Below are positions 995 through 33,104 of a DNA stretch of 64,000 nucleotides, piece by piece. Each line of letters opens with the position of its first letter. The stretch's first letter is position 1. Made by a program: the position numbers and the translations under genes. The notes below the pieces were generated by a model. It was not told where the DNA came from. It saw only the letters and a list, made by a program, of their open reading frames with translations, and did not search any database. The DNA comes from Eutreptiella sp. 'Long Island Sound 2002' (taxonomy: Eukaryota > Protista > Euglenida): positions 173,228,001 to 173,292,000 of the forward strand of contig OZ038378.1 of NCBI GenBank assembly GCA_964036045.1, written 5' to 3'.

Positions 995-3881
995 ATGTAT
1001 CCGGTTCGCGAAGTGAATTTCGATGAAGTTTCAGTGGCTTCACAGGTACCTTGTTTTTGGGCACCTCGGCTGAACCAAACTCGAATTGATGTCGTTCGTT
1101 GGGTCACGCGTGTCATGTGTTGTCCGGGTTCAATGTTGAAGGTTCGGATGCGAAGTCCCCGTCCGTTTGTCCTCAGAAGTCATTTCTTTCGACAAGTTCA
1201 TACGCTGAAGGAATGCGAAGAACTGATAGCGTAAAAAAGAGGCATCAATCATTCATCAAAGGAGGTTCACCGTATGTGGAACGCGCCCTTGAACTCTTGG
1301 GTGAACATCTTCATCCCGGTAGCTCTGTCCTCGAGATAGGTACCCGGAACACAGACGGGTTGATCGCATTGCGCGGAATCGTGAAGTCGTCGGGAGTCGT
1401 GCATGGCATCGCACTATCGGAAATAGAGGTATGGCAGTTGCTGATATTGCAAATTCATGCGATTGTTGTGTCATATGGACAACCAGCGGAGGCTCAAAGA
1501 GCAGAATAATTTTCAATCGAGCCATGCAACTTCAATGGATGACGAATCATCCTTCGAAATGGTGGTCCACGGAGGCTCAGAAAAACAAAACAAACAGGTC
1601 ATTTGGCGCGCGTATGCTCGCTAAACCCAGCGATACATTTCTTTGCAAGTGAAGAACGAGCAACCGCAAGCAATTTTTGGTTTGCGTCTCTTTTTGCATG
1701 GTAGGTTTCTTTTCTTCGGGTGTGGGAAACAATGCCGCGGAGGAGGGGGGGTTAAGTTGGTCCAGGGGGGGTTAAGCTGATCCAAAATTGTCCAGCGTCA
1801 ACCGTTCCAAAAGGGGCGGAGGGGTTGGGGCTAGGGGCTCACTTGCTGTGGAACGTTCCGTATTGTTGTGGAATGGGAGCTAGGAGCCGGGCTATTTTTG
1901 TGAGATATCAAATATCACTGGTTTGCTTCTCCATGTCACATGAGATTAACGGGTGCGCCTTCAACATTTTTTTTTGTAAGAAGTCGCAACTCCGGAACAA
2001 TTTGGGGGCGAGGGGGGGGGGTGTTAGATCGGCAACAACCAGCACATCCTCAATACGCCAATTATTGGGCGCCGCTGACGCGCAAACGGCACACCATGTC
2101 ACATTCAGCGACACACCAACTACTCGGCTCCGCGAACGCGGAAACGACACGAGCAAGAGCACCGGCCGCAAGGTCGGGGGCCGTCGGATGACGTCGTTTA
2201 CGTCACGTCCTTGTAACTCATGGGACGGGGTGTGTATGTTGTGTTGGGCAACACATTGTGTTTTGACACGGCACATTAGCTTGGGTGCCACCCAAAAAAC
2301 TCGTGTCCCTAGCATACTCGAAGACCATGGGACATGTGCACTGCGACATGGAGTTCAAGGTTCGTACAAGACTGCGGGACATGTAATGTTTTGTATATGC
2401 ACCATCCACCAAACGCCAATGACATTCTTTGTCGATATATGGGATCGTGGACAAAGAAGAATGATCACCACCACAAAGCCAATAACAATGGCAAAAAGGA
2501 GGAGGAAGAGAATGAGTAACAAATGACTTCAACATTGTGCATGTTCACGTGTACAAAGGTGCAGCATTGCATTTGCACCGTGTGCAACCACGCAGCACTA
2601 GGCAAAAGCTTTGACGTATGACCTGCAAACATGTACTTTGACAATCAAACCTAACCCTTACGAGAGGAGCTTACCCAACCACGGAGGGGGCCGGGGGGGC
2701 TAGCTGTTGTGCCGCAGCATGTGCCTGGCTCTTGTAGTGCGGACATGATGTGCTGCGGCTGGACCTTGGATTTTGCCTCTCTGTCTTTGCTCTCAAGATC
2801 TTGTGCCGCGGACATGTTGCATGTCACACCACTTTGAACAATTTTTTTGAAGATGGATTGTTGGATCATTCTGGGCTTGGTGTGACACGGCACGCAATGG
2901 TTCGTGTACTGGGATGGGCACTTGTGCCACCTGTGTCGGTGTGCCTCGATGGCATGGAGGGGGGGGGGGGATTGGAACGTGCGCCATGGCACGTCCACAG
3001 GCCTGAGAACATGTCCCTTCCGTCGTATTTCCTCCAAATCTTGACCGAGTTTACGATTTTTGTTGGGTTGTGCCTGTGTCAAGTCCTTGAATAATGAATC
3101 GGGGTGTCCAGCTTTGGGAAGACACCACTGCGCGATTGGGTACTTTTAGGTCCATCACCAATTGTTGCGTCATCTTTGTGTCTAGAGCAATCAGGTCTGG
3201 GCGCAGCTGCAAGCGGATGGCTTGCAAGAAGGCATACACGTGCATGCAGAGACCACAGCGTCCCAGATTGTGCGCCCTAACTCGCTGGATGGAATTGCGA
3301 TACAATATGTTGCAGAACTTCTTGAACCCGATGCAGCACAGTCTTTATTGGCAGAGTGCCGCAGCTGCCTGAAACCGACTGGTCACTTGGCGGTAGTTTG
3401 TGCAACAGCCGCTCCTTCAAGATTCATGTCTTCTCGGAAACTGAAAATGCCAAGCTTGCGCTCGCCCTTGGAGGCTGAAGGTTTTCTGCTACTCTTGTGC
3501 CCTGCCGCTAACGATCACAAACGATGATTCGTGGCACGCCACATTGCATGGCACCTGCAGGACAGTGTTCGGATTTCAGGGGATTTTCTGCAGGGGTCAT
3601 GCCGAACCGGGATCCTCTGCAGGACCTGCAAGCAAACGTTGCAGCCGAGGTTGGAAGGCATCCGGGCAGATTTAGGCCGGTGGGCATTCTTCAGAGAACA
3701 CTTCGCATTCGTTATGGTTGCAGGGTATTCTTGCGATGTGGTCAAGACCGTCAACAAATCCGGGTGGAATGTGGAGATCATTTTGGCCAGCGTCGTGGAT
3801 GATATTGCAGAAGAATTCAAGTATGGCTGTGTGAAACGTTGGGCTGCGGCAGCCGCAGCGGGCCTGGCAGGCTGTCACACG
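995..3881 (+). CDS. Spliced class I SAM-dependent methyltransferase-like gene, 5' part (exons 995-1045, 1177-1428, 3195-~3395/3480, ~3580/3594-3881)
   Basis: Phase-0 GT-AG introns 1046-1176 and 1429-3194 join MYPVREVNFDEVSVASQ|KSF...HPGSSVLEIGTRNTDG...VHGIALSEIE|VWAQLQ...NSLDGIAIQYVAELLEPDAAQSLLAECRSCLKPTGHLAV. These resemble motif I (degenerate), post-I, motif II and the LKPGG-like motif of class I MTases. The in-frame TGA at 3525-3527 needs a further intron, whose boundaries are ambiguous. Confidence 0.5.
2012..2182 (+). repeat. Dispersed repeat family A, variant subtype (intronic copy)
   Basis: Near-identical to the reverse complement of 48471-48650 and shares the core caatacgccaa..tgggcgccgct.acgcgcaaacggcac with 6095-6417 and 16630-16951. 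Confidence 0.85.
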
Positions 3882-6094
3882 GTGAAGGAACGTCGAAAAT
3901 GAAATGGTTTCAGCACCGCCTTGCCTCAGGCACACGCACATGCCAAGCCATGGGCAACACCAACGTTGGGGGAAGGGAAACCAGGGGAAACAGAGGACCC
4001 GAGGAAAGCAAGGGAAGTGCACGGAATCCCCCATTCTCGCCGGAGCCCCACGAAAAACGCCACAAAACTGCCAACGAATTGAGGGAACGGGAGAAATGCG
4101 CTGTTGCCATTCCCTGTGTCCCCAATACCCACACTTTCCCAACGAAGCACCCGCAACGCTCACAACAAGTCAGACACCCCAACCAAGGACCCAAGGCCCA
4201 CAGCCACATCGGTAACCAACAACCGACGCTATGCCAGCCCCAACCATATTCCAACCTTGGCAGACCACGTCCAAAGAACAAGGTGGCAGATGGCAGTCGC
4301 GAGCATGACTGCAGGCCTGAGGCCAGCCTGAGGCCTGGGCGTCCGAAGGCTGACCCCTCGAGGCCCGGGACCAATTGTCTGCCCTGCCCCCCCACCAGAT
4401 CCACCAGCTTCGCCAGGCTTGCCGGGGTATCTGAGAACTGTTGTGGTTGCCCGTCTGGGTCTCCCTGACCTGGGCTCGACCATCCTGACGCACGCAGGTT
4501 CCTGCGCACCCCCGCTCCGTGGGTACTGGTGCCCCGGTGTAGGCGAATCCCTTCGGGATTGCAGGGTCACAGTGGAGAAGTCAGATGTCAGGCCCTGGCT
4601 CACTTGTTTGTACGGCGATGCGCACCCGCACGCCGCACGGACGTGTCTTCCGTACCTGCCGAAGGGAGTTCTCCTCCAACAATGTGCGCGGCGCATTCTG
4701 GCATGCCGAGGGCTTTTCTCCCGTGCCCGGGATGTCCCCCAAAATTTTTCGCGGAGGGGACCTCGCGCATTCCGGCATGGCAGATTTTCTTTGGGGCTCG
4801 CCCTGACCCCCCGGTGGGGCTCGCCCTGACTGGCGTTGGGAAGGAGTTTTTCTCTGGTTGTGCAACATACAACGAGGCTGGCAGCGATCTCGCCTGCTGG
4901 AACGTAAGCTCAAGTACAAGCCCAAATCCCGCTCCCCCCACCCTCAGCATAATCTCCGTGTTTCCCCCCCATTTCCCCAGGAAAAGCCACCAAAATTTCC
5001 ATCATCCTTTGCCTGTTGGTGGTAGTTCGGGGCAGGAGTCCTATGCGAGTGCCACTCGCCGACACGCGAGCGAACGATTTGGCGTATTTCCAAACATCGG
5101 TGTTCCAAACCTCGGGTTCGACCCACGACCCCTGGGTAGGCTTGCGGGCGGTGTTCGGCACCTTCGGCTTCAGTCCCGGTACTAATCGAGGTGTTGTGCC
5201 CTGCCCAGGGCACTGAAGGAGTTGGGCGCTAGAACCACTCGACCAGCCGGAGTATCTCCCGGTTTTCTGAGGGTCCACCCGACTGGTTTGAGTGTTTCAT
5301 TGCTGTCGCGCGCCAACGGTATGTCTGAATTGTACTGCGGATGGTGCCAAAGTGACACCGGCCTCCGAGTCAAATTTCTTTGCGTGCCGCAACGGTGGTT
5401 GAGAGAGGGGCATTCTCCCCATTCTCGCACACCGTTCTTCCCTCCTTGTAGGCGAATCTCTTCTGGCTCGCGGGGTCGCTGTGGACCAAGCGTATGCTGC
5501 GACCGGGGGTGGGAGTTAGGGGTGATTTCGGCCCACGCCAGGGTAGCGACCCAGCCGGTGGGTTTTGGAGTTTGGTCATACCACCACCAGCCCACAATGA
5601 ATGTCTCTGTAGCCGTGCGGCCGTGGTTGGGATCCGGTGTTGAACTTGCGGTGTGTTTTATCAGAGAAGCCTTGGAGAAATCGTCGGAGAGTGGCACTCC
5701 GGTACGCCGGGCAAATGATGAGTCCTTCGCGGAGAGGCAGTGTAGCACTCCGCTGCGCATCGACTCGACGACGTCGTCGTTCGTGGAGAGGTCGTGGGAT
5801 GGGACTCACTGTGTCACCCCCGAGACGGCATCGGAGACGCTTGGTGGCACTCCGCCGCCCATGGAATCCGCCACCCGTCAGCCTGAGAACAGCATGAACT
5901 GCGTGGAAGCTGCAGAATTGTTCTCCCTAGGTAAAGGCCGCTATCAGTCGCCCGTGAGTGACCCGACGAAACCGGCGACGTCCAAGCAGAAGAAATACAA
6001 GAAGGTGTTGCGATTGTTCAGTCTGCTTGGGGCTTGGCTGAGGCTTGGTTGGGGCAGCGGTTGAAGGGGCAGCATTACAGAGGGGGCGGGGGGT

Positions 6095-6417
6095 GCAGCA
6101 AGGCAGGTTATGGACGGCCTGAGGACGGAGGTGTAGGGACAGCGAAAACAGTCAAACGACCCCCGCACCAACCAGCACAACCCCCAATACGCCAACTACT
6201 GGGCGCCGCTAACGCGCAAACGGCACATCCTGCCACATCCAGCACAGCCCCAGCACACCAACCACTGGGCTCCGCGAACGCAGACACGACACCAGCAGGA
6301 GCACGGGCCACAGCGGCCGACAGAAAGCAGCGACCCGATGCAGCATGCAAAGGGAAGAACGGGTGACGGTCCAGGGCCCCGTAAAGAAACAACAACCAGA
6401 CGGAATGTCACACAGGG
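6095..6417 (+). repeat. Dispersed repeat family A, ~323-bp copy
   Basis: Almost base-for-base identical to 16630-16951 and ends in ...ccagacggaatgtcacacaggg. Confidence 0.92.
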
Positions 6418-7037
6418 GATGATTCCGTACGGCACGGGGAATATTCCGCACCCTTCCCAAAAAAATCGCATTTGGCACGCTGTAGGGACAGGGATTCTGA
6501 GGTGCCGGTCCCCAGAAGGCACAAGGCCCAATAAAACGGTCAGGAATCGTTTATTAACTGAGTACCGCTAAAGCTTTGCAAGCTGTCAACATGCTTGAAG
6601 GTCACACTTGACGCATGTAGCCGTGGTAGTTTGTTGGTGTCCTTAGGTGCAGAGGCAAGACTGTCGCCAACCGCACATCAAACTCTACTCGGGGAAAGTT
6701 AGGCACCAACAAAAAAGAGATGTAAAGAAATTTCCGCACCTATTTGAAGTACGGAATTTTCCCTGCGGAAAAGGCCCCCTGCGGAGTTTCCCCTCCTCCT
6801 GCATCATCATTTAAAATGTTATGATCACCAATTGCCATCATTGACCGAACTGCGATCCGTCAACCGCCAACCACCAGCTGTTGAGAGATTCGCAACCCCG
6901 ATACCAGCCACACATTTTTGACCCAGCAATGCTACTCGCACACGAAATCACCGACGATCACCAGAAATGCTTACCCTGTCAGGTTGCGTTGCGGGGTATT
7001 GGGTTTCCCCAGAAGCTGCACGCCGCTTTCTATGCAG

Positions 7038-10000
7038 AGCTTACTGCAGCTATCCGAAGAAATGTCGTCTTTGGAAGATAGAGTGGAGCTGTCTGATTCT
7101 GAGGTGTGTGCCGCCCAGGAACGCAGTGCCTGGTCGTGATGGACCAGCCCGCAATGTTGTTCGGGTCGGCATTTGGCTAGCATCTGGTGCTCACGGTCGT
7201 GTGTCTTCTTAGGTCAGCGCTTTGCGTGCTGCGGTCAAGGCAGAGAAAGCGAAGCGCCACTCACTGCGCGATCAGTTGCAGGCGTTGAAGGCTGAGCCCA
7301 GGTTGGTCTCTCTGTTGTGGATCATCATCATGCATCAGGACGAAAGGTCCCGCGATATTTGACACTCACCCACTTGCATGAGCATCCGGTGACTGGCCTC
7401 GCCACAAAGCTATTCATGTGCTCGTTTTGTTACCCTCCTCTTCCCCCGCCGCGCCCCCCCCGCTCCACAATTTTGAGCATTGATCATGGAGCCATATTTT
7501 CGGGTTGACATTCGCAAATGCACCTTTTGCATTTGGCTGATTGCTTTGCCTGTCTGTTGTGGCCTTTTGGGTGGGGTTAAAGGAAATTTCGGCTTTTTTT
7601 GGGACACAAACCCTCGACTCCAACAAATACAATACACCATTGCAGAAACAGGGGTTCCAATCTCTAGCTGCAGTATGCGGAGTGCTGTGCATACTGAGAA
7701 CAAAGCAGGCGGTCACAACCAATCCCAAGCATGTCCAGTCAGGCTTTTGCCACAAGGAAAAGGGCCCTCACAAACTCAACAGCTCCTGCCCCGCCCCCAT
7801 TTACTTAGCCTTTATGGCACCCCCCCCCCCAGGGTGTTGCTTTAATTTTCATTTCGGCAGTGTGTGTGTGGGGGGGGGGGGGGGTGCTCCCCCCTCCCCC
7901 CTTGCTCGAACTCATGTCAGAATCAGGGTTCTGGGAACCTTTTTTCGTTTGGGCCAATTTTTTTATCCCGCGCCTTCAGCGCACCTAGAGGAGGGTTTGG
8001 TCATTCCACTCATATCATTTCTTCCCTGTTTCGCAGGTATCATGTCACAGTGTCCCATAAGTACGTTCTCTGGCACCCCGGTCCAACTGTGCCCCCGCGC
8101 AAAATGCGACGATGTGAGAACCACAATACTATTTTTTCGCTTCAAGACATAGAAAGCATGTTCCACATTTTTTCTGAACATTCCAATGGCAACTCAGATC
8201 CTTCTAGTTTCTCTTCGAGTTCAAAAGAGGATACAAATGGTGAGTCGAACTCAGGTGAGTCCAACTCTGATTGATCTTTGCCGAAGAATTGGATCACAGT
8301 GAGCATTCCTCCGCATTTCCTGTTGGTGTTGCCTGGTGGTGTTTAGGTGAAGGCGCAATGTATGGACCCAAAAAGATAGGTTGCGTTGCCTGTCTTCAGA
8401 CATTATGACAAATGTATAAGCTGAATGGGTCAGTGTGGTATATTTTTGGAGCTCCTTGCGCAGGGGGGGGGGGGGGGGTTAAAGGAGCAACAACCAGACG
8501 GAATGTCACACAGGGGGGGCTCCCCCCTGGACCCCCTCTCCCCCTTCCCTAGACCAAGCAACGCCCTGCCCCCCCCCCCCTCCTCCCAGACCCCCGTCCC
8601 TCAAGACTCAAATAAAAATGCAACGTTTCGTACCAACGTTTCGTACGCTTCATCGGTCTCTCGGTTCCTCATTCTTTAACCACGCGGACCTGTATACTGC
8701 CTCACCGGCTGCTGCCACAATTGCACCCCACGAGTCCACAGTTCCAGTCATCAAGCATTTTCACTGTGTTCCCCTGTTGGAGTTTCAAATTGCCCATGAA
8801 ACCACAGTAAACAACTGAAACCCGCTCAAAAATGCACAACAACCGAATGCTCGCCGTGCTATTCTTGCAGTTGTACAAGGAGCCAATTGCAGGAGTGGCT
8901 TGATTCCTGTATGACCCCCAGTGAAATCGATGCGATGGCCGACACCGATGCGGCACAGGTGCCGGTGAAACCGCTGCTGCTGGCAATGGCAAACACCTAT
9001 CAAGTCTGTGCATCCTGCTTTTCTCGTTCAGGGCATGTCTTGCGCGCTGCAGACTGGGCGCCAGGGAAGTCGTAGAGCGGCCGTACACCCGAGGGGGAGC
9101 GTCCCCAACACCCAGCACCCCATCCTCTTCGCCCCACTGCCCCCTTCTAATGTGCAATTGCACCTCGAAAACTTTGGAATCGGAAAAACACTTCTCAAAG
9201 GAAATCTGTGCATTACCATGATTGGGGTGCGCATCCTGGGAGGGGAGGTCCCTGCCAGAGCCTCCCCTTCCCTCTTCAAATACTTCCTTGCTGACCCGGG
9301 ACATCATTGTTACACCATCGTGCACCCGGCGCACATCAGAATCGTGCACACCTGATGCACGTTTTGCATGAGCGATAGGCCCAATTCCAGCGAACAACTC
9401 TCCCGTGTGACTGTTCAGGCAGTAGACCTGTCGTACATGGGGGGGGGATGTTCCACATAGGCTGGTTGGTGGCCAGTCAACCGGTGTTCAGTACCAATTT
9501 TTTTGTATGACCTGCTTGTCGCTCGAGGTCTGTTACGGTGGTGGACGGGTAGATGGCCAATTGATGAAATGGCCACCTGCAAGCGCGTGGGTTTCCAGCC
9601 CCTTGAGTAAAGTTCTTTTCTTCTGTTGCCAAAATTCTTTTTCTGATTTCGGTGGACGATCCCAAAAACAGGTGCTCGTTTCTCATCCAACACACTGCTA
9701 TCATGCAGGCACAGCATGTTTGGCGCGTGTACAATTTTTTGCGCGTGTTGCGCTGACACTTTGTTCTGGGTGTTCAGGAGCATCGCCGAAATTGCACCCT
9801 GCAGCTGGAGCAGAAGGATGCCATGGTTGCCTCCATTGTGGCGTCCCTGAAGGTATTCTGCTGTCTGCCGTGCTGCCGCTGTACTGCTTGCATGCACAGC
9901 TCACCCATGCGGCTGCTGTCCGGCTCCGCCCTTCTGTCGCCTCAGTGCCGCTGGCATCTGCATCACAGTTGTTCAGGTTGTGCAAGCCAAGAGCCGTTTC

Positions 10001-27893: not shown

Positions 27894-29093
27894 CTGGATT
27901 GCATGGTTGGCTGGGGAAGCGATGAATTCTCCTTTTTGTGTTCACCTTGTACAACAAGTGGAGTGAACTACGACTTGTCCAGCTTGGCTAATGCTTTGTG
28001 TTGAGTTAGAAATGGCCATGTAACTGCGGCCGTACTAGGGGAAAAAGTGAAGGAAGGGGATGACAAGGGGCCAAATCTGAAGCTCGGACAAAGGTAGCAA
28101 AGTGGTTTGACGGGTACATGCACAAGAAGCACTGCCCTTGTAACAACCCTTTTGCGGTGTAAGAACTCCCCAAAACTCCCTACCTTTCCTCTTAGACTTG
28201 AGGGTACCACAGTAAGTTGGCTGAAGAGATGCCAGCACTATGCAAGCTTACCGTGCCAACCAGAAGGTCTGGCCTTCCACAGTACAGTTACATGTAGCCT
28301 AGAGGTTTTGGCTGACAAAACACAGCTAAATGGTGGAGATACCAAGGCTCAGGTTGACTGACTGTACATATGCTCATGGCTAAATAGTGTGGAACATTGC
28401 TGCATACGCGTATCAGAACGTGCATGTGTAGAGCGCCTTGTTCACCTGCATGCGCCCAAAGCCCCTACACCACACATTCAAATGGACATTTCCAATGGGG
28501 ATGAAACTTAGTATTTCTCTTATCATTTCAAGGTCATACAATGTGATGGGTTGCCCCGGGTGGAAAAATTTTTAATTGGAGGAACTTGCTTCCCTGGTCT
28601 TCCTAGTGGGTCATTCTGGTTTCGTTTCCGGAACCTCCTGTTTTGGATGGACCTAGTAAGTAACTTCCTATGGGCTTACTGGCTGGACTTTCTGGTCAGA
28701 AGGTGACTTCTTGGTTTGACTTCCGGGGGGTTCCTTGTCCCAGTTTGCCACCCAAATGTCAACCCATTTTCCTCAACATCCCAAGCACACTCAATGACAC
28801 TGTGAGTGTCTAGAACTGGAAAATAAAATGCATCAGCTATAGGTCGTTGCCTCCAGGTCCCGTGCCTCCCTCGCCCTGCCTTCTTTCCTCCCTCACCCTG
28901 CACCTCCTCACGTACCTCGCCTCCCGTCATCCGTTGCCCTGCCTGAGGTCCTTCTTTACCCTGCCCCATGTCACGCCTTACCCTGTCTCCCCTCCTCACT
29001 CCCCGTGTCTCATGCGGTCCCTCCCCTTCCCCCCTGCATAGCCCTACCTCACCTCCTCCTTCTGCTGAGCGAGTATATTTTTTTTTCGGCAAG

Positions 29094-32000
29094 ATGCTGT
29101 CCGTGACACCAGACAAGTTTTCTGACAGTGTGACGGCCGAGGAAATCGAGGCGGTTTTCCCCGCTGGAGACCCTCTTGTCCTTGTCACACAGCTGCGCAC
29201 CTCTTGGCTACAAAAGGCGATGGTGACGCCGTCGTGGGCCACAGCTGCAGCAGAGTTGTCGCAGCTTCTAGGCCTTGTGGTTGCAGAGAAGAACTTAGGT
29301 CTTGACGCGGGGCAGTGTAGTGTCGTGATGCAGGCAGCAAAAGGAGTACAGGAGGACATGGTCAAAGTGCACGGGTACAAGCCCAGCCGTGCCGAACCGT
29401 CGAAGCCGGCAGACCCGGAGGCGACAGCGGAGGCTGGTACAGCAGAGACGCAAGAGCCGGGTGACGACAATGACGAGGAGGAGGTTGCATCGGCTGGAGC
29501 AGCCACTACGTTGGCGGACGGCGACCAGAAGTTTATTGTGAATGTGTTCCATCAAGAGACCAACAAGCGGGTCCCAATGGGCTCTGGGACGTTCGACCTC
29601 GACGATGCAATGCGGCACGCATTGCGGCGCGGCAGCAAATCGGTCATCGTCCCGATGAAAGTCGCGGAACGTGAGGCAGGGGTCGTTGAATTGGCGCTGG
29701 ACGCCGAATTCCGCAGGGGTTTCATGGAGATGCTGTTCATCACCGTCGTGAGTGCAACAGGCTTAGAGAGCCCAGACCCGAGCTATGAGCCCGATCCGCT
29801 TTGCGAAGTGAAGATGGGGAGCATCGTGTGGGAGACAAGCGTCAAAACAAGCACCATCACTCCGACCTGGCAGGAGAGGTTTGATTTTACACCCAACAAA
29901 GTGGTGACCGTGAAGGTGTATGATGATGACAAACAAGGGCGTGAGCTGATGGGCTCGGGGTCATTTGCGCTGGATCAGAAGATGAGGAAGACCCTGAAGA
30001 GCCATCCTTCCAGAATCCTGAAGGTCCCCTTGACACTCGAGGGGCAGAAAGCAGGCGCTGTCCGGATGATCCTTGAGACAACCTTCAACGGGGCTGTCAT
30101 CGACAAGCTCACGATCACCGTGAACGACGGCATGGATTTGCTAAACAAGGACGTCAAAAGCCTCTCGGACCCTCTGTGCCAAGTGACGGTCGGTCATGTG
30201 ATGCGTGAGACCGCGGTCCTGTCGAACACCCTGTCCCCCCGGTGGAAGGAGGCCTTTGATTTCACACCAGAGGCGAAGGACGAGTACGCGGCTGCCCTCC
30301 GGGAACTGGGCCACGAGGGTCACCTGAAGCAGCATGTTTGGGACATGGATTGCCACCGAGCGCTCCGCAGTCGGCCCGCCAAGCTGGACGCCCTGTGGCG
30401 CTCTCTGCGGCCGCAGCCCGCCGTCTGGGGGACCGTGGCCGAGCTGCACAACTTCGTCCAGGCGCCCCCCTCCGCCGATCAGCGGCAGTTCGGCATTGCG
30501 AGGCTGCAGGAGTTCGCGGCGCAGACGAGCTGCGACCTCCAGATTCCCGAGCCCGAGCCGCAGGGTCGCGTGGACATCCGGCCCCACGGGGGGTTCGTGC
30601 AGATGACGCAGGCCCACACCGCGATCCTCGACTGCGGGACCTCGGAGCGCCTGCAGGCGACGGTGGGGCAGGCCGTGGGGCACTGGGCGGTCGCCGCGTG
30701 CCTCGTGACCGACGTCGACGACCGCTACTTCGCCACGGCGATGGACAGCGGATACCGCTACGTCGGCATCCGGGTGTATTTCTTGGGGGTGCCCTGGGAC
30801 GTGCACCTCACGACCACGCCGTTCCTCACCGCCCAGAGGACCGTGGACCGTGGGGTCGCGCACGACCGGGCCCTGGAGAAGGACGCGCTGCATGCGGCCG
30901 CGGCCCAGGGCGATGCCCGGTTGGCCGACGTTGTCTTGGCCCTGCGGAAGGAAGCAGTCTTTGACCTGGACAGCTACGGGCACCTGGCGGTCACGCACGC
31001 CTGCATGCGTATGCGCTGGGACATAGCAGGGCAGCTGGCACAGGTCATGGTGCGGCATGCGAGTGAAGTGCAGCTGCAAGAGCAGGCAACATGGTCACTG
31101 CTGATGGCAGCCGAGTGTGCAGGGTACGGCGACCGCTGGGACCTGCTCGGGGCACTGCAGCAGGTGATAGAACATGGCAACCGCCATCACTCGGGCTCGG
31201 CCGTCATCTATATGGCCGCCACGCAGCACGTGTACCACGCCTTGCAGGCGGTGTTGGGGGTCTGCACAGAGTTCACTTGGAGTGGCAAGGGACCCGAATC
31301 AGGGGACCATTTGGAAGTTTCGACCGCAAGGGCGCTCTTCAAAGCTCTGGGCCCGAACCGTACCATAGCTCATGTAGACCTCAGCAGCTCCGGCATTGGC
31401 TCCAAACACATTGAAGAACTGGCCAACCTCTTGAAGGTAAATACTGGGATAACGGCCATCAACCTCTCCAATTGTTGTGTTCCGGATGCCGGATGTGAAG
31501 CATTGGCCCAGGCGTTGGAGGGCAACACAGTGTTGACGTCCTTTGTCCTGTCTGGATGTTCCATTGGAGAATCTGCCACGCATTTGTTCAAGGCGCTGGA
31601 AGCGAACAGGGCCCTGTCGTCCCTGGATCTCAGCAATAACAACGTGGGTAACGCTGAAAGCGCAGCGCTCGCAAAAGCTATGGCAGTGAATACCACCCTC
31701 ATTGACATCAACCTCAGTGTGAATGGCATTACGGAGGCCGGGGCTCCGTATTTGGCTCAAATCCTCCAAGTGAACAGTAGACTGAAGTCCATGGCACTGG
31801 GAGGTAACCACTTGTCCGATTTCGGCTGCGATCTGTTGGCAGTCGCATTGCGCAGTAACACAGCGCTCACATCTCTTGATTTGCGAGCAAATGGTGTTGT
31901 GGAGGGCGCCGAGGCATTGCTGAGGGGTTTGGAATGCAATTCGACACTACAGCTTCTGGACCTGAGCGAAAATGGATGGCGCAACTCGAAGATCCTTTTC

Positions 32001-33104
32001 GCGAATCCACGAAACAAATCGGTGCACATCCTGCACCGTGCGATGCATTACGTGGACTGTGTATTGTTGGCCAGTGCCCTCGCATCGAATGCCACGCTGA
32101 CTTCCGTCAGCCTTAGAGATAGTGGTGTTGCTGCCGATGACTGCAAAGTTCTGGCTCAGGCCCTCGAAGTGAATGCGAAGCTGTCATTTGTTGATTTGGC
32201 TGGCAACAAAATAGATGGTGCCGGTTGCATTCCATTGGCTAAGGCCCTGGAGATGAACAAGGCCCTCACATCCATCATCCTGGATGAGAATTCCATTGGC
32301 AATGCCGGTGCCGTGGCCTTGGGCAAGGCTCTCGAAGTGAACAGCACGCTGACAGTCGTCAAACTTCGGGACAATCAGATTGGCATGGAAGGCGGAGAGG
32401 CATTGGGCAACGCATTGAGGAAGAACACCACGGTCTGTGAGATAGACCTTGGCAACAATGAAATTGGTGAAGAAGGAAGCACAGTGTTGTTCGATGCCCT
32501 TGCAGCAAATGGGACTGTGACCTCCCTCCGGATTGACGGCAACAATATTTCGGACGCCGGCGGGACTGCACTGGGCAAGGCCCTTCAAACGAACTGCGCT
32601 TTGGCAGCGGTTCATCTCAGTGATAACTGCATTTGTGATGGCGGCAGCCAGGCGATATTCGAGAGCTTGGAAGCAAACCGCACCCTGACTACCCTTGACC
32701 TGGACAACAACTTGGCGGGTGCACAGGGCATGCGAGCCCTCCGCAATGCTTTGACCGGAAACTCTGTGTTGAAGGCTGTGCACCTGGACGACAATGATGT
32801 AGACGACCATGACGCCGCAGTAGTATTCGAGGCCCTGGAAACGAATACTACCCTAACGGCCCTACACCTCAATGCGAACAAGGTGGGCTATCGAGGCGGC
32901 AAGGCATTGGCCGAAGCTCTGCACAAGAACACCACCATCCGATCCATCCACTTGCGCGACAACAGCCTTCCAAAGGACGTAAAAACCCACAAATGGCTCG
33001 CGGATGCTCTAGACGCAAATAACTTTGTGAAGTACATGGATCTCAGGGGGAATCCAATAGACTACAAGTTCGAGCACTTCACAGACAGAACTGTGGAGCT
33101 TTGA
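29094..33104 (+). CDS. Intronless 1336-aa mosaic protein: N-terminal helical region, C2 domains (half/full/half), degenerate RelA/SpoT-synthetase-like segment, ankyrin-like repeats, 21 ribonuclease-inhibitor-type LRRs
   Basis: Single open frame. The ATG at 29094 follows a T-tract and AG. C2 signature LFITVVSATGL...DPLCEVKMG...TITPTWQERFDF...VKVYDDD...MGSGSF at 29724-30086. Ankyrin-like ALHAAAAQGD...DSYGHLAVTHAC at 30882-31050. Twenty-one ~28-aa repeats of the NxTLTxLDLxxNxIG type at 31326-33060. Confidence 0.9.
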   Translation: MLSVTPDKFSDSVTAEEIEAVFPAGDPLVLVTQLRTSWLQKAMVTPSWATAAAELSQLLGLVVAEKNLGLDAGQCSVVMQAAKGVQEDMVKVHGYKPSRAEPSKPADPEATAEAGTAETQEPGDDNDEEEVASAGAATTLADGDQKFIVNVFHQETNKRVPMGSGTFDLDDAMRHALRRGSKSVIVPMKVAEREAGVVELALDAEFRRGFMEMLFITVVSATGLESPDPSYEPDPLCEVKMGSIVWETSVKTSTITPTWQERFDFTPNKVVTVKVYDDDKQGRELMGSGSFALDQKMRKTLKSHPSRILKVPLTLEGQKAGAVRMILETTFNGAVIDKLTITVNDGMDLLNKDVKSLSDPLCQVTVGHVMRETAVLSNTLSPRWKEAFDFTPEAKDEYAAALRELGHEGHLKQHVWDMDCHRALRSRPAKLDALWRSLRPQPAVWGTVAELHNFVQAPPSADQRQFGIARLQEFAAQTSCDLQIPEPEPQGRVDIRPHGGFVQMTQAHTAILDCGTSERLQATVGQAVGHWAVAACLVTDVDDRYFATAMDSGYRYVGIRVYFLGVPWDVHLTTTPFLTAQRTVDRGVAHDRALEKDALHAAAAQGDARLADVVLALRKEAVFDLDSYGHLAVTHACMRMRWDIAGQLAQVMVRHASEVQLQEQATWSLLMAAECAGYGDRWDLLGALQQVIEHGNRHHSGSAVIYMAATQHVYHALQAVLGVCTEFTWSGKGPESGDHLEVSTARALFKALGPNRTIAHVDLSSSGIGSKHIEELANLLKVNTGITAINLSNCCVPDAGCEALAQALEGNTVLTSFVLSGCSIGESATHLFKALEANRALSSLDLSNNNVGNAESAALAKAMAVNTTLIDINLSVNGITEAGAPYLAQILQVNSRLKSMALGGNHLSDFGCDLLAVALRSNTALTSLDLRANGVVEGAEALLRGLECNSTLQLLDLSENGWRNSKILFANPRNKSVHILHRAMHYVDCVLLASALASNATLTSVSLRDSGVAADDCKVLAQALEVNAKLSFVDLAGNKIDGAGCIPLAKALEMNKALTSIILDENSIGNAGAVALGKALEVNSTLTVVKLRDNQIGMEGGEALGNALRKNTTVCEIDLGNNEIGEEGSTVLFDALAANGTVTSLRIDGNNISDAGGTALGKALQTNCALAAVHLSDNCICDGGSQAIFESLEANRTLTTLDLDNNLAGAQGMRALRNALTGNSVLKAVHLDDNDVDDHDAAVVFEALETNTTLTALHLNANKVGYRGGKALAEALHKNTTIRSIHLRDNSLPKDVKTHKWLADALDANNFVKYMDLRGNPIDYKFEHFTDRTVEL

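Follow-up and report, generated by a model that had tools for sequence, protein, structure and literature searches.

The segment 30270-31199 (+ strand) of the window, the whole analysed stretch of 64,000 nucleotides, probably encodes a dead and fast-evolved Tas1-like synthetase together with an ankyrin module, placed between a C2 region and about 20 leucine-rich repeats (LRRs) of the RNI type. This reading is carried by homology, fold, residue loss, duplication within the lineage, and transcription. The segment lies in an uninterrupted open reading frame (ORF) at 28968-33104 (1378 aa, + strand), which reaches 5' of the ATG at 29094 to 28968. Below, the window copy is the RelA/SpoT-like module inside this ORF, and residue numbers are ORF amino acids unless a model is named. 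The features of the gene are as follows.

29069..29093, + strand: 5' UTR of the mature mRNA; the leader apparently joins near 29069, where an AG occupies 29068-29069.
29094..33104, + strand: coding sequence in a single exon, 1336 aa from the ATG at 29094 (ORF list and translation).
29523..30269, + strand: C2 domain region (Pfam C2 at 1.6e-25, in two stretches, the best at ORF aa 256-342).
30270..30467, + strand: N-terminal helical extension of the synthetase-like module, which aligns with the paralogues as well as with P0003/P0004 and is kept in the protist family.
30468..30857, + strand: degenerate RelA/SpoT-fold (Tas1-like) synthetase core, ORF aa 501-630 (structure alignment, conservation table, and HMM).
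30858..31199, + strand: three ankyrin repeats (structure matches to DARPins and tankyrase; Pfam Ank in paralogues at the aligned place).
31365..33101, + strand: about 20 LRRs of the RNI/ribonuclease-inhibitor type, 28 aa each (Pfam LRR_6 at 5.5e-27; motif positions with a period of 28).

The called protein P0001 (1336 aa) is identical to the coding sequence. Its precomputed Pfam label is PF27087. Nucleotides 30717-30866 (+ strand) translate exactly to DDRYFATAMDSGYRYVGIRVYFLGVPWDVHLTTTPFLTAQRTVDRGVAHD, the peptide on which the sequence-only reading had been based, and the peptide lies inside this one ORF. On the ORF, C2 scores 89.7 bits (cut-off 22) and LRR_6 scores 92.1 bits (cut-off 23.4). 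Pfam finds C2 and LRR families only; NACHT, NB-ARC, or another STAND module is not found in the ORF, nor is a secretion-related Pfam domain. The LRR array follows the module as first described, with about 20 units of 28 aa in place of the 21 that had been counted, and around ORF aa 995-1044 it is interrupted by a single insertion of about 50 aa. The arrangement C2-Ank-LRR would be a new architecture around a pseudoenzyme module.

The gene is transcribed. The RNA evidence consists of assembled metatranscriptome contigs, in which DNA content is possible in principle, and these contigs are 100% identical across the coding sequence, without joints. Contigs of the RNA libraries begin at 29069 in two runs, and none is present upstream. 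In one contig, loose letters ahead of 29069 (TTTTTTTTC) match the Euglena spliced leader at its 3' end; this overhang is 9 letters long and is seen in that single contig. The proposed joining site sits in a leader-like genomic stretch at 29060-29087. The mRNA appears to carry a spliced leader, joined at 29069. The genome contains 3309 occurrences of the 24-mer of the Euglena spliced leader and the control contains none, in agreement with the euglenid host that had been proposed. Two signs of a real gene can be mentioned here: the 4.1-kb frame has no stop or frameshift, and the RNA coverage starts at the proposed leader-joining site.

The window copy is almost certainly a homologue with the RSH fold. 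Four paralogous loci match it when the 2.28-Gb genome is searched in six frames (E-values of 2.3e-17 to 2.8e-14), and these four paralogues keep the motifs K..RA..K, L.D..R, GYR, E.Q.NT, and GH..Y..R. A family HMM built without the row of the window copy still matches ORF residues 514-624 with 26.2 bits. Neither the window segment, at thresholds up to E<=10, nor the whole ORF has a match to the Pfam family PF04607, a six-frame genome scan with this family gives none there either, and the four closest paralogues lack one as well. RelA_SpoT was also not found in an NCBIfam scan of the segment. With phmmer against PDB sequences, the segment gives noise only (UPP synthase at E ~1). A family profile of 7 sequences has no PDB matches, and a profile of 66 sequences that includes the ankyrin part matches ankyrin proteins only. 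The genome has one Pfam-positive RelA_SpoT domain (L010). An hhalign comparison of a small family alignment with it places the motifs in the expected register, at an E-value of 0.077 and a probability of 0.7%, which is not significant.

The family profile finds 719 relatives at E<=1e-3, some of which are bacterial or phage, and reaches PF04607-bearing proteins at E-values of 1e-10 to 1e-12. Pfam RelA_SpoT lies on the same stretch of the relatives P0081 (29.4 bits), P0099, and P0112 (29.7 bits), where the cut-off is 27, and PF04607 is matched by 22 of the 66 aligned family cores at E<=0.01. The link to RSH in PDB appeared only with the core profile of these 66 sequences. Its best match is Tas1 (6ox6) at 2.8e-11, over residues 260-375, followed by YwaC (2.4e-5), Rel of M. 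tuberculosis (7.5e-5), RelA (1.8e-4), and RelSeq (4e-4). The match to Tas1 is six orders of magnitude better than that to the next RSH; this kinship is that of the family, as the window copy alone is too degenerate to show it. Judged from these searches, the resemblance to RelA/SpoT is not a matter of chance. What supports the RelA/SpoT-fold domain of the sequence-only reading is homology together with fold, and Pfam does not; the order and spacing of its motifs are like those of RSH synthetases, as first claimed.

The AF2 model of the window segment has a pLDDT of 81, with values >90 in half of the residues. Its core, residues 67-195 of the model, aligns to 8acu_B with a Z-score of 12.0 and an rmsd of 2.9 A over 121 aa in VIA-align, and also to 1vj7_A (Z 11.5) and 5ded_E (Z 11.4), with 2.9 A over 121-126 aa. 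The beta-sheet is retained at high confidence. The core model of an intact paralogue has a pLDDT of 92.9, and its top 50 Foldseek matches are all RSH (TMq 0.55-0.70). The comparison with PF04607 that had been suggested gives no direct Pfam match, but the top Foldseek matches of the window model are nearly all RSH synthetases, CapRel being the best (E 2.2e-3). Structure prediction returns the nucleotidyltransferase (RSH) fold.

The ankyrin stack (about residues 198-302 of the model) superimposes on DARPins and on the ARCs of tankyrase with Z-scores of 10.3-11.0 and an rmsd of 2.6-3.0 A over about 88 aa. In the window copy, Pfam Ank stays below the threshold (E 0.065), and the paralogues pass Ank_2 at the aligned segment (4.5e-9). 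The first ankyrin repeat or linker of the paralogues is deleted here. The ankyrin repeats expected after the RelA/SpoT-like domain are present, three of them according to the model alignment.

The active site is strongly degenerate. Only 7 of the 23 family-conserved positions are kept in the window copy, while the 65 other sequences each keep 15 or more, with a median of 22. The kept residues are R534, D585, G595-Y596-R597, G607, and H632. The lost ones include K530 (now E), Y539 (P), D548 (Q), R551 (T), E611 (D), Q613 (H), and K623 (Q). Two further Lys are lost, one by deletion and one by change to R, and the GH..Y..R tail is deleted. Seven columns are 100% invariant in the 65 relatives, and six of them are changed or deleted (K530E, D548Q, R551T, E611D, Q613H, and one deleted R). 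Compared with the paralogues, the window copy is missing stretches of 4, 6, and about 33 residues. The replacement of EIQ by DVH had been seen from the beginning; the comparison with the family reveals that further catalytic and phosphate-binding residues are also gone.

In RelSeq, D264 of the motif D..G.R is the metal-binding Asp, and E323 of E.Q.RT is the catalytic Glu. In the alignment with YwaC, the family's Asp falls on that of DIAGVR and its Glu on that of EIQIRT. The window copy has Gln (Q548) and Asp (D611) at these sites, so the pair of Asp and Glu used in RSH catalysis is not present. Of the R.K...K helix, whose basic residues contact the ATP phosphates, only R534 is kept. The N-terminal extension is helical in the window model (H2-64), and pLDDT is low over residues 46-59. 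Where the paralogue model has the helix H34-45 carrying R..K...K, the window model shows a coil (pLDDT ~48). Pyrophosphate transfer would not be expected because the metal-binding Asp is absent, the Glu is shortened to Asp, and the phosphate-binding helix is broken. The domain is highly likely to be catalytically inactive.

The alternative is an active pyrophosphokinase with a remodelled site, in which D611 takes the place of the Glu and further residues stand in for the missing Asp and Lys, that is, a membrane-recruited signalling enzyme regulated by the LRRs. Asp for Glu is a conservative change, and non-canonical active sites occur in the RSH superfamily. The retained fold with its confident beta-sheet is compatible with such an enzyme, as are the kept R534, D585, GYR loop, and H632, the expression of the gene, and the presence of a synthetase-LRR fusion (L030) in the same genome. 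The alteration or deletion of six of the seven invariant columns, the disrupted phosphate-binding helix, and a terminal branch five times the median speak against it. In addition, Hogg and co-workers reportedly found in 2004 that the equivalent RelSeq mutants, D264G and E323Q, are without synthetase activity. An active enzyme is quite improbable.

In the tree, the core of the window copy groups with L003, L005, and P0006, and this clade is starred (98/93). At 1.85, the terminal branch of the window copy is about five times as long as the median (0.36). As judged from this placement, the window copy is a fast-evolving duplicate from within the lineage and not a recent bacterial transfer. The phylogeny proposed for deciding between a bacterial and a eukaryotic origin thus places it inside the lineage, next to L003, L005, and P0006, and the module is not a lone oddity. 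Word-index searches find no orthologue with the same architecture except the protein itself. No close paralogue of the N-terminal or C2 part is present in the genome, so the search for the parent of a supposed retrocopy came up empty. The C16 paralogue, which has the WEVH and Q changes in common with the window copy, was considered as the parent and dismissed, because it has several exons, is of the L003 type, and carries synthetase and Ank but neither C2 nor LRR.

The base composition of the module is unusual. The GC content is 0.669 in 30001-31000 and 0.573 and 0.558 in the flanking kilobases, so the segment is indeed richer in GC than its flanks, as had been noticed. GC3 reaches 0.86-0.95 across 30270-30857 and is 0.62-0.73 in the rest of the ORF. 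The GC content at codon positions 1 and 2 is about 0.585, far under the GC3 of 0.95, which is a further sign of a real gene. The conversion into a pseudoenzyme coincides with this sharp local GC3 spike.

It can be asked whether the module is a relic, shuffled in between functional C2 and LRR parts and kept as a nearly free linker under local GC-biased conversion. The confinement of the GC3 spike to the module, the very long terminal branch, the three deletions, and a composition rich in Ala, Gly, Arg, and Val could all be explained in this way. However, the model contains a confident RSH beta-sheet and an ankyrin stack, with half of its residues above a pLDDT of 90, and neither the hydrophobic core nor the GYR motif has been lost. 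GC1 and GC2 are much lower than GC3, and therefore the amino acid sequence does not follow the base composition. The 4.1 kb without stop or frameshift also disagree with a relic, which is a doubtful explanation.

The dead synthetase-like module has many relatives. The genome contains at least 9 family loci, several of which are fused to LRR arrays or a P-loop. L030 is an intact synthetase-LRR fusion, and L031 combines a P-loop, a weak NACHT match, RelA_SpoT, and LRR in one gene. Outside this genome, WD40, laminin-G, HEAT, or RCC1 repeats occur in relatives. The eukaryotic relatives traced include those of a diplonemid and of MMETSP/EukProt transcriptomes, and metagenome data also contain relatives. 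On these sequence matches, the Tas1-like synthetase plus ankyrin module occurs widely among euglenozoans and other protists. A protist family of Tas1-like synthetase domains that are always followed by ankyrin repeats is apparently undescribed.

Tas1 is a (p)ppApp synthetase toxin delivered by type VI secretion in Pseudomonas aeruginosa, and it is the best sequence match of the family core profile among solved structures. Tas1 and the family are alike in K.reRA..K...Y.GD...i.D..R.T, E.Q.N..M..AK, and GH..Y..R, and in the RSH synthetase fold. They differ in context. Tas1 is a secreted bacterial T6SS toxin with an immunity protein, whereas here the domain is in a eukaryotic cytosolic C2/Ank/LRR protein; the context is not that of a secreted effector, since the gene is a single-exon eukaryotic one and its mRNA apparently bears a spliced leader. 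The window copy is also without the catalytic Asp, the catalytic Glu, and most basic residues.

RelQ/SAS1, RelP/SAS2, and the synthetase domain of Rel/RelA/SpoT (PF04607) have the same fold, motif order, and spacing as the window copy. As a difference, hydrolase, TGS, and ACT domains are all absent from the window protein, and its degenerate synthetase is fused to ankyrin. CapRel (PDB 7ztb and 9erv) shares the logic of an RSH domain and a sensor or regulatory part in one chain. CapRel is a tRNA pyrophosphokinase, encoded by bacteria or phages, with a pseudo-zinc-finger antitoxin domain, whereas here the RSH domain is combined with Ank, LRR, and C2 and has probably lost its activity.

Eukaryotic RSH synthetases are known chiefly from plastids (plant RSH1-4), with scattered divRel. 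Fungal NLRs carry a RelA_SpoT effector domain. These fungal effectors, and divRel of Dictyostelium and Ascomycota, are eukaryotic, non-plastid RSH domains like that of the window protein, and a part of them sits in receptors with repeats. The window protein differs from fungal NLRs in having no NACHT or NB-ARC. The RSH survey lists divRel and gives Mesh1 as the only subgroup widespread in eukaryotes (PMC3153485). The words ankyrin, protist, and euglen- do not occur in that survey, while the window domain belongs to a Tas1-like, ankyrin-linked clade. Literature searches found nothing on Euglena with RelA/SpoT or on a small alarmone synthetase with ankyrin in eukaryotes, and for Tas1/ppApp in eukaryotes they returned bacterial papers only.

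The module may act as a folded, non-catalytic spacer or docking part, and the retained GYR loop possibly still holds a nucleotide base. Membrane targeting would come via the C2 domains, so that the whole protein might be a C2-recruited LRR/ankyrin scaffold, not an enzyme. A scaffold or docking role of the dead domain could equally well be right or wrong. As another speculation, the dead domain could have become a receptor, or a decoy, of a protist pathway for nucleotide-based defence or signalling; it would bind the product or substrate of the active Tas1-like paralogues, or these paralogues themselves, and relay this via LRR, ankyrin, and C2. Many intact family members are fused to Ank, LRR, or a P-loop, and the WD40, laminin-G, HEAT, and RCC1 repeats of relatives are typical sensor modules. 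The base-stacking GYR loop is retained, and the strong codon-position bias suggests continued constraint. The absence of a NACHT/STAND module from the protein counts against this role, which is unlikely, if conceivable. The innate-immunity or nucleotide-signalling receptor that the sequence-only reading suggested finds no support in this protein. The idea of a sensor joined to an enzyme, raised by the same reading, would fit the intact synthetase-LRR and P-loop-synthetase-LRR genes better than the window protein, which very probably cannot catalyse.

The Tas1-like synthetase domain with ankyrin forms a sizeable protist family, with the 719 matches including the bacterial and phage ones. It raises the question of whether (p)ppApp-type nucleotides act in the eukaryotic cytosol, in signalling or in cell suicide. 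The window copy alone is probably not an enzyme. Its gene is a clear case of the passage from enzyme to pseudoenzyme, and could serve as a natural "dead" control or be a possible regulator. It is a rather remote idea that euglenozoans and other protists have a cytosolic family of Tas1-like pyrophosphokinases coupled to ankyrin, LRR, WD40, laminin-G, HEAT, or P-loop sensors and corresponding to toxSAS/CapRel, with the window protein as a non-catalytic, membrane-recruited receptor, decoy, or regulator bound to the active enzymes or to their nucleotide product. If true, the family would be a eukaryotic counterpart of bacterial toxSAS/CapRel abortive defence or of alarmone signalling.

The window gene lies in a frame that reads through the RelA/SpoT-like module without interruption.

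28968-33104, + strand: open reading frame of 1378 codons, uninterrupted
30270-31199, + strand: degenerate RelA/SpoT-like module and ankyrin repeats
30468-30857, + strand: Tas1-like synthetase core

What the sequence-only reading observed here is confirmed, because the peptide it quoted is the exact translation of 30717-30866, Pfam on the 1378 codons reports C2 (1.6e-25, two stretches) and RNI-type LRR_6 (5.5e-27) alone, and the segment is more GC-rich than its flanks, as stated (0.669 in 30001-31000 versus 0.573 and 0.558 in the neighbouring kilobases). The C-terminal LRRs are likewise present, in about 20 units of 28 aa each rather than the 21 that were counted. In the 310 residues of 30270-31199, Pfam gives no RelA_SpoT match even at E<=10, and its ankyrin matches are sub-threshold (E 0.065).

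The homology was reached through relatives. With the 310-aa segment as query, a six-frame search of the genome (2.28 Gb, 2317 contigs) picks out four paralogues, L002-L005 (E 2.3e-17 to 2.8e-14). These loci have ORFs of 447-497 aa in which the motifs are sharply conserved (K..RA..K..IKY; LVD.NR.T; EDHYF...GYRHVQ; WE(V/I)QFNT; AK..GH..YKT.R), followed C-terminally by Pfam-significant ankyrin repeats; Pfam RelA_SpoT does not match these paralogues. P0003 and P0004, found by word search in other data sets, are 41-42% identical to L003, and their N-termini, MGCAAS and MGAGAS, look like putative acylation signals. Searched by HMMER with a 7-sequence profile, 1.84 billion representatives yield 719 proteins at E<=1e-3, of which 92 reach E<=1e-10. 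In three of the matched proteins, P0081, P0099 and P0112 (E 1e-10 to 1e-12), Pfam RelA_SpoT falls exactly on the family-matched stretch (29.4, 26.5 and 29.7 bits, respectively; cut-off 27). PF04607 matches 22 of the 66 aligned cores at E<=0.01 (best 7.4e-8). Against PDB sequences, the 66-sequence core profile finds Tas1 best (6ox6, E 2.8e-11), then YwaC (2.4e-5), Rel of M. tuberculosis (7.5e-5), E. coli RelA (1.8e-4) and RelSeq (4e-4). The YwaC alignment pairs the family's invariant Asp with that of DIAGVR and its invariant Glu with that of EIQIRT. Based on these three lines of sequence comparison, the family can be tied to the RSH superfamily.

Structure prediction agrees. The AlphaFold2 model of the window segment (66-row alignment) has pLDDT 81 and pTM 0.66. 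Its Foldseek PDB list consists almost entirely of RSH synthetases (CapRel, SAS1, RelP, RelA, SpoT, RelSeq and Tas1), with modest E values of 2e-3 to 4e-2 and probability ~1. By VIA-align, model residues 67-195 superpose on B. subtilis Rel (Z 12.0, rmsd 2.9 Å, 121 aa), SAS1 (Z 11.4, rmsd 2.9 Å, 126 aa) and RelSeq (Z 11.5). Residues ~198-302 superpose on DARPins and tankyrase ankyrin domains (Z 10.3-11.0, rmsd 2.6-3.0 Å, ~88 aa) and are predicted to be three ankyrin repeats. For the core of the intact paralogue L003 (pLDDT 92.9), the top 50 Foldseek matches are all RSH synthetases (E 5e-6 to 5e-4, TMq 0.52-0.70). The proposed RelA/SpoT fold was thus right in homology and in fold, by the core profile and both models; the models match RSH synthetases, not an unrelated family, and do not lack the nucleotidyltransferase fold.

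The word "degenerate" also describes the window copy well. Among 23 core-alignment columns conserved at >=80% in the 65 other sequences, it keeps 7; the others keep at least 15 (median 22). In 1378-aa ORF numbering, K530E, K538R, Y539P, D548Q, R551T, E611D, Q613H, K623Q and G631A are changed, one Lys and the Y..R..E tail are deleted, and R534, D585, G595-Y596-R597, G607 and H632 are kept. Helix H34-45 (R..K...K) of the paralogue model becomes coil in the window model (pLDDT ~48). D264 and E323 of RelSeq are essential for synthesis; aligned with them, the window copy shows Gln and Asp. Because of these losses and the disrupted helix, the window domain is very probably a pseudo-enzyme, the better of the two options originally offered, ahead of an active nucleotidyltransferase.

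Free decay of the module as a mere linker was also considered. GC3 reaches 0.86-0.95 in 30270-30857; the remainder of the ORF has 0.62-0.73 and the intact paralogues have 0.72-0.76. At codon positions 1 and 2, GC is just ~0.585, far below GC3, so the frame is still under constraint, which argues against a freely decaying linker. Candidate causes of the GC3 spike are biased gene conversion and selection, and the former may also have driven the turnover of amino acids. This composition has probably also given rise to the long antisense ORF at 30141-31079 (- strand, 312 aa).

The gene is transcribed. Contigs from three estuary metatranscriptome runs and one other run agree with the ORF at 100% identity and contain no joints; one A>G difference between RNA contigs and window is seen at 30355. 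Contig coverage begins at 29069 in two runs, with none upstream, and one contig, by a single 9-letter overhang, has TTTTTTTTC ahead of 29069, the 3' end of the spliced leader. The Euglena spliced-leader 24-mer occurs in 3309 copies in the genome and 0 in the reversed control, which marks the host as a euglenid of the Euglena type. The assembled contigs and the one overhang suggest a single-exon mRNA with the spliced leader joined 25 nt ahead of the ATG at 29094, and the 1336-aa protein P0001 is suggested as its product. The genomic stretch TTCTGCTGAGCGAGTATATTTTTTTTTCG (29060-29093), just 5' of this ATG, itself resembles the Euglena spliced leader. Since the RNA contigs start within this stretch, and given the overhang, the relict leader seems to include the acceptor AG in use today. 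The genome yielded no intron-bearing parent gene.

Residues 1 to ~100 of the protein (29094-29500) form a small domain with no local Pfam match; the called protein carries the precomputed Pfam label PF27087. The domain recurs in a 649-aa frame (G000:C17:21518584-21518772, L035; 48% identity) and a 2192-aa frame (G000:C19:26513345-26513707; 28% identity) of the same genome.

The phylogeny proposed for deciding between bacterial and eukaryotic origin was run on 66 cores (maximum likelihood, midpoint-rooted). The window copy groups with L003, L005 and P0006, all from the same genome, in a starred clade (98/93), on a terminal branch of 1.85 substitutions/site versus a median of 0.36. By this grouping and branch length, it arose by duplication within the lineage and afterwards evolved at roughly five times the typical rate; it is no fresh bacterial import. 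The wider clade (n=24) includes P0012 of the diplonemid Artemidia motanka (EukProt), and MMETSP and EukProt transcripts fall in other clades. Short bacterial/phage-type proteins, P0114 included, form a clade nested among protist clades in this tree, whose midpoint rooting gives no direction of transfer. The metagenomic P0114 (1119 aa) has its synthetase-like core C-terminally (960-1079) and matches PF05136, the lambda-type phage portal family, weakly and below threshold (23.0 bits, cut-off 32.9). For P0083 (208 aa, metagenomic), models of XopAD/SKWP type III effectors give a weak match with their C-terminal end (E ~1e-3). These two members hint that the domain may travel as toxin/effector cargo.

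A profile search of the genome found further members. L027 and L028 are intact, with many ankyrin repeats beside the synthetase, and the intact L029 has a weak LRR. Others, together with the L003 and L004 loci of the six-frame search, are as follows.

G000:C5:34017432-34021391 (L030, locus 5432-9391), + strand: 1320-aa frame, N-terminal synthetase and ~40 LRRs
G000:C21:6097640-6101623 (L031, also L010, locus 3640-7623), - strand: 1328-aa frame
G000:C16:24980304-24989168 (L032, L041), - strand: multi-exon paralogue, synthetase core then ankyrin
G000:C14:7953715-7955208 (L004) and G000:C14:8020537-8022030 (L003): two near-identical 497-aa synthetase-ankyrin genes, ~67 kb apart

The L003/L004 pair suggests a recent segmental duplication. 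The C16 core is interrupted by a ~7.4 kb intron and reads WEVHFN...SQ, sharing Gln-to-His and Lys-to-Gln with the window copy while keeping the Glu, and is possibly an intermediate that has partly degenerated. L030 keeps all K/R/D/E/Q motifs (81.7 bits to the family HMM; Pfam LRR_1 1e-124), and its product is a better enzyme-plus-sensor candidate than the window gene. L031 contains a P-loop GHAGQGKTW (weak NACHT match), a Pfam RelA_SpoT match (28.2 bits, cut-off 27) and C-terminal LRRs, an NLR-like layout with the synthetase domain between NTPase and repeats. RelA_SpoT is an effector domain of fungal NLRs. Relatives in other data sets carry WD40, laminin-G, HEAT or RCC1 modules.

For the window gene, a sensor-enzyme role stays speculative, because Pfam finds no STAND module in the protein and searches gave neither an orthologue nor a close paralogue of its N-terminal/C2 part. 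The idea of a novel receptor for immunity or nucleotide signalling is, for this gene, still a conjecture.

According to a survey of RSH proteins (PMC3153485), Mesh1 is the only RSH subgroup widespread in eukaryotes; besides plant RSHs, it lists "divRel" (Dictyostelium, Ascomycota) and "divSpo" (two algae). The survey does not mention ankyrin, protists or euglenids. Literature searches on Tas1/ppApp in eukaryotes and on Euglena RelA/SpoT gave no description of the family, an absence that is no proof of novelty. An enzyme-plus-sensor logic is plausible for the intact synthetase-LRR and P-loop genes of this genome, as predicted from their domain layouts. The intact Tas1-like synthetase-ankyrin family is the more interesting object than the window copy.
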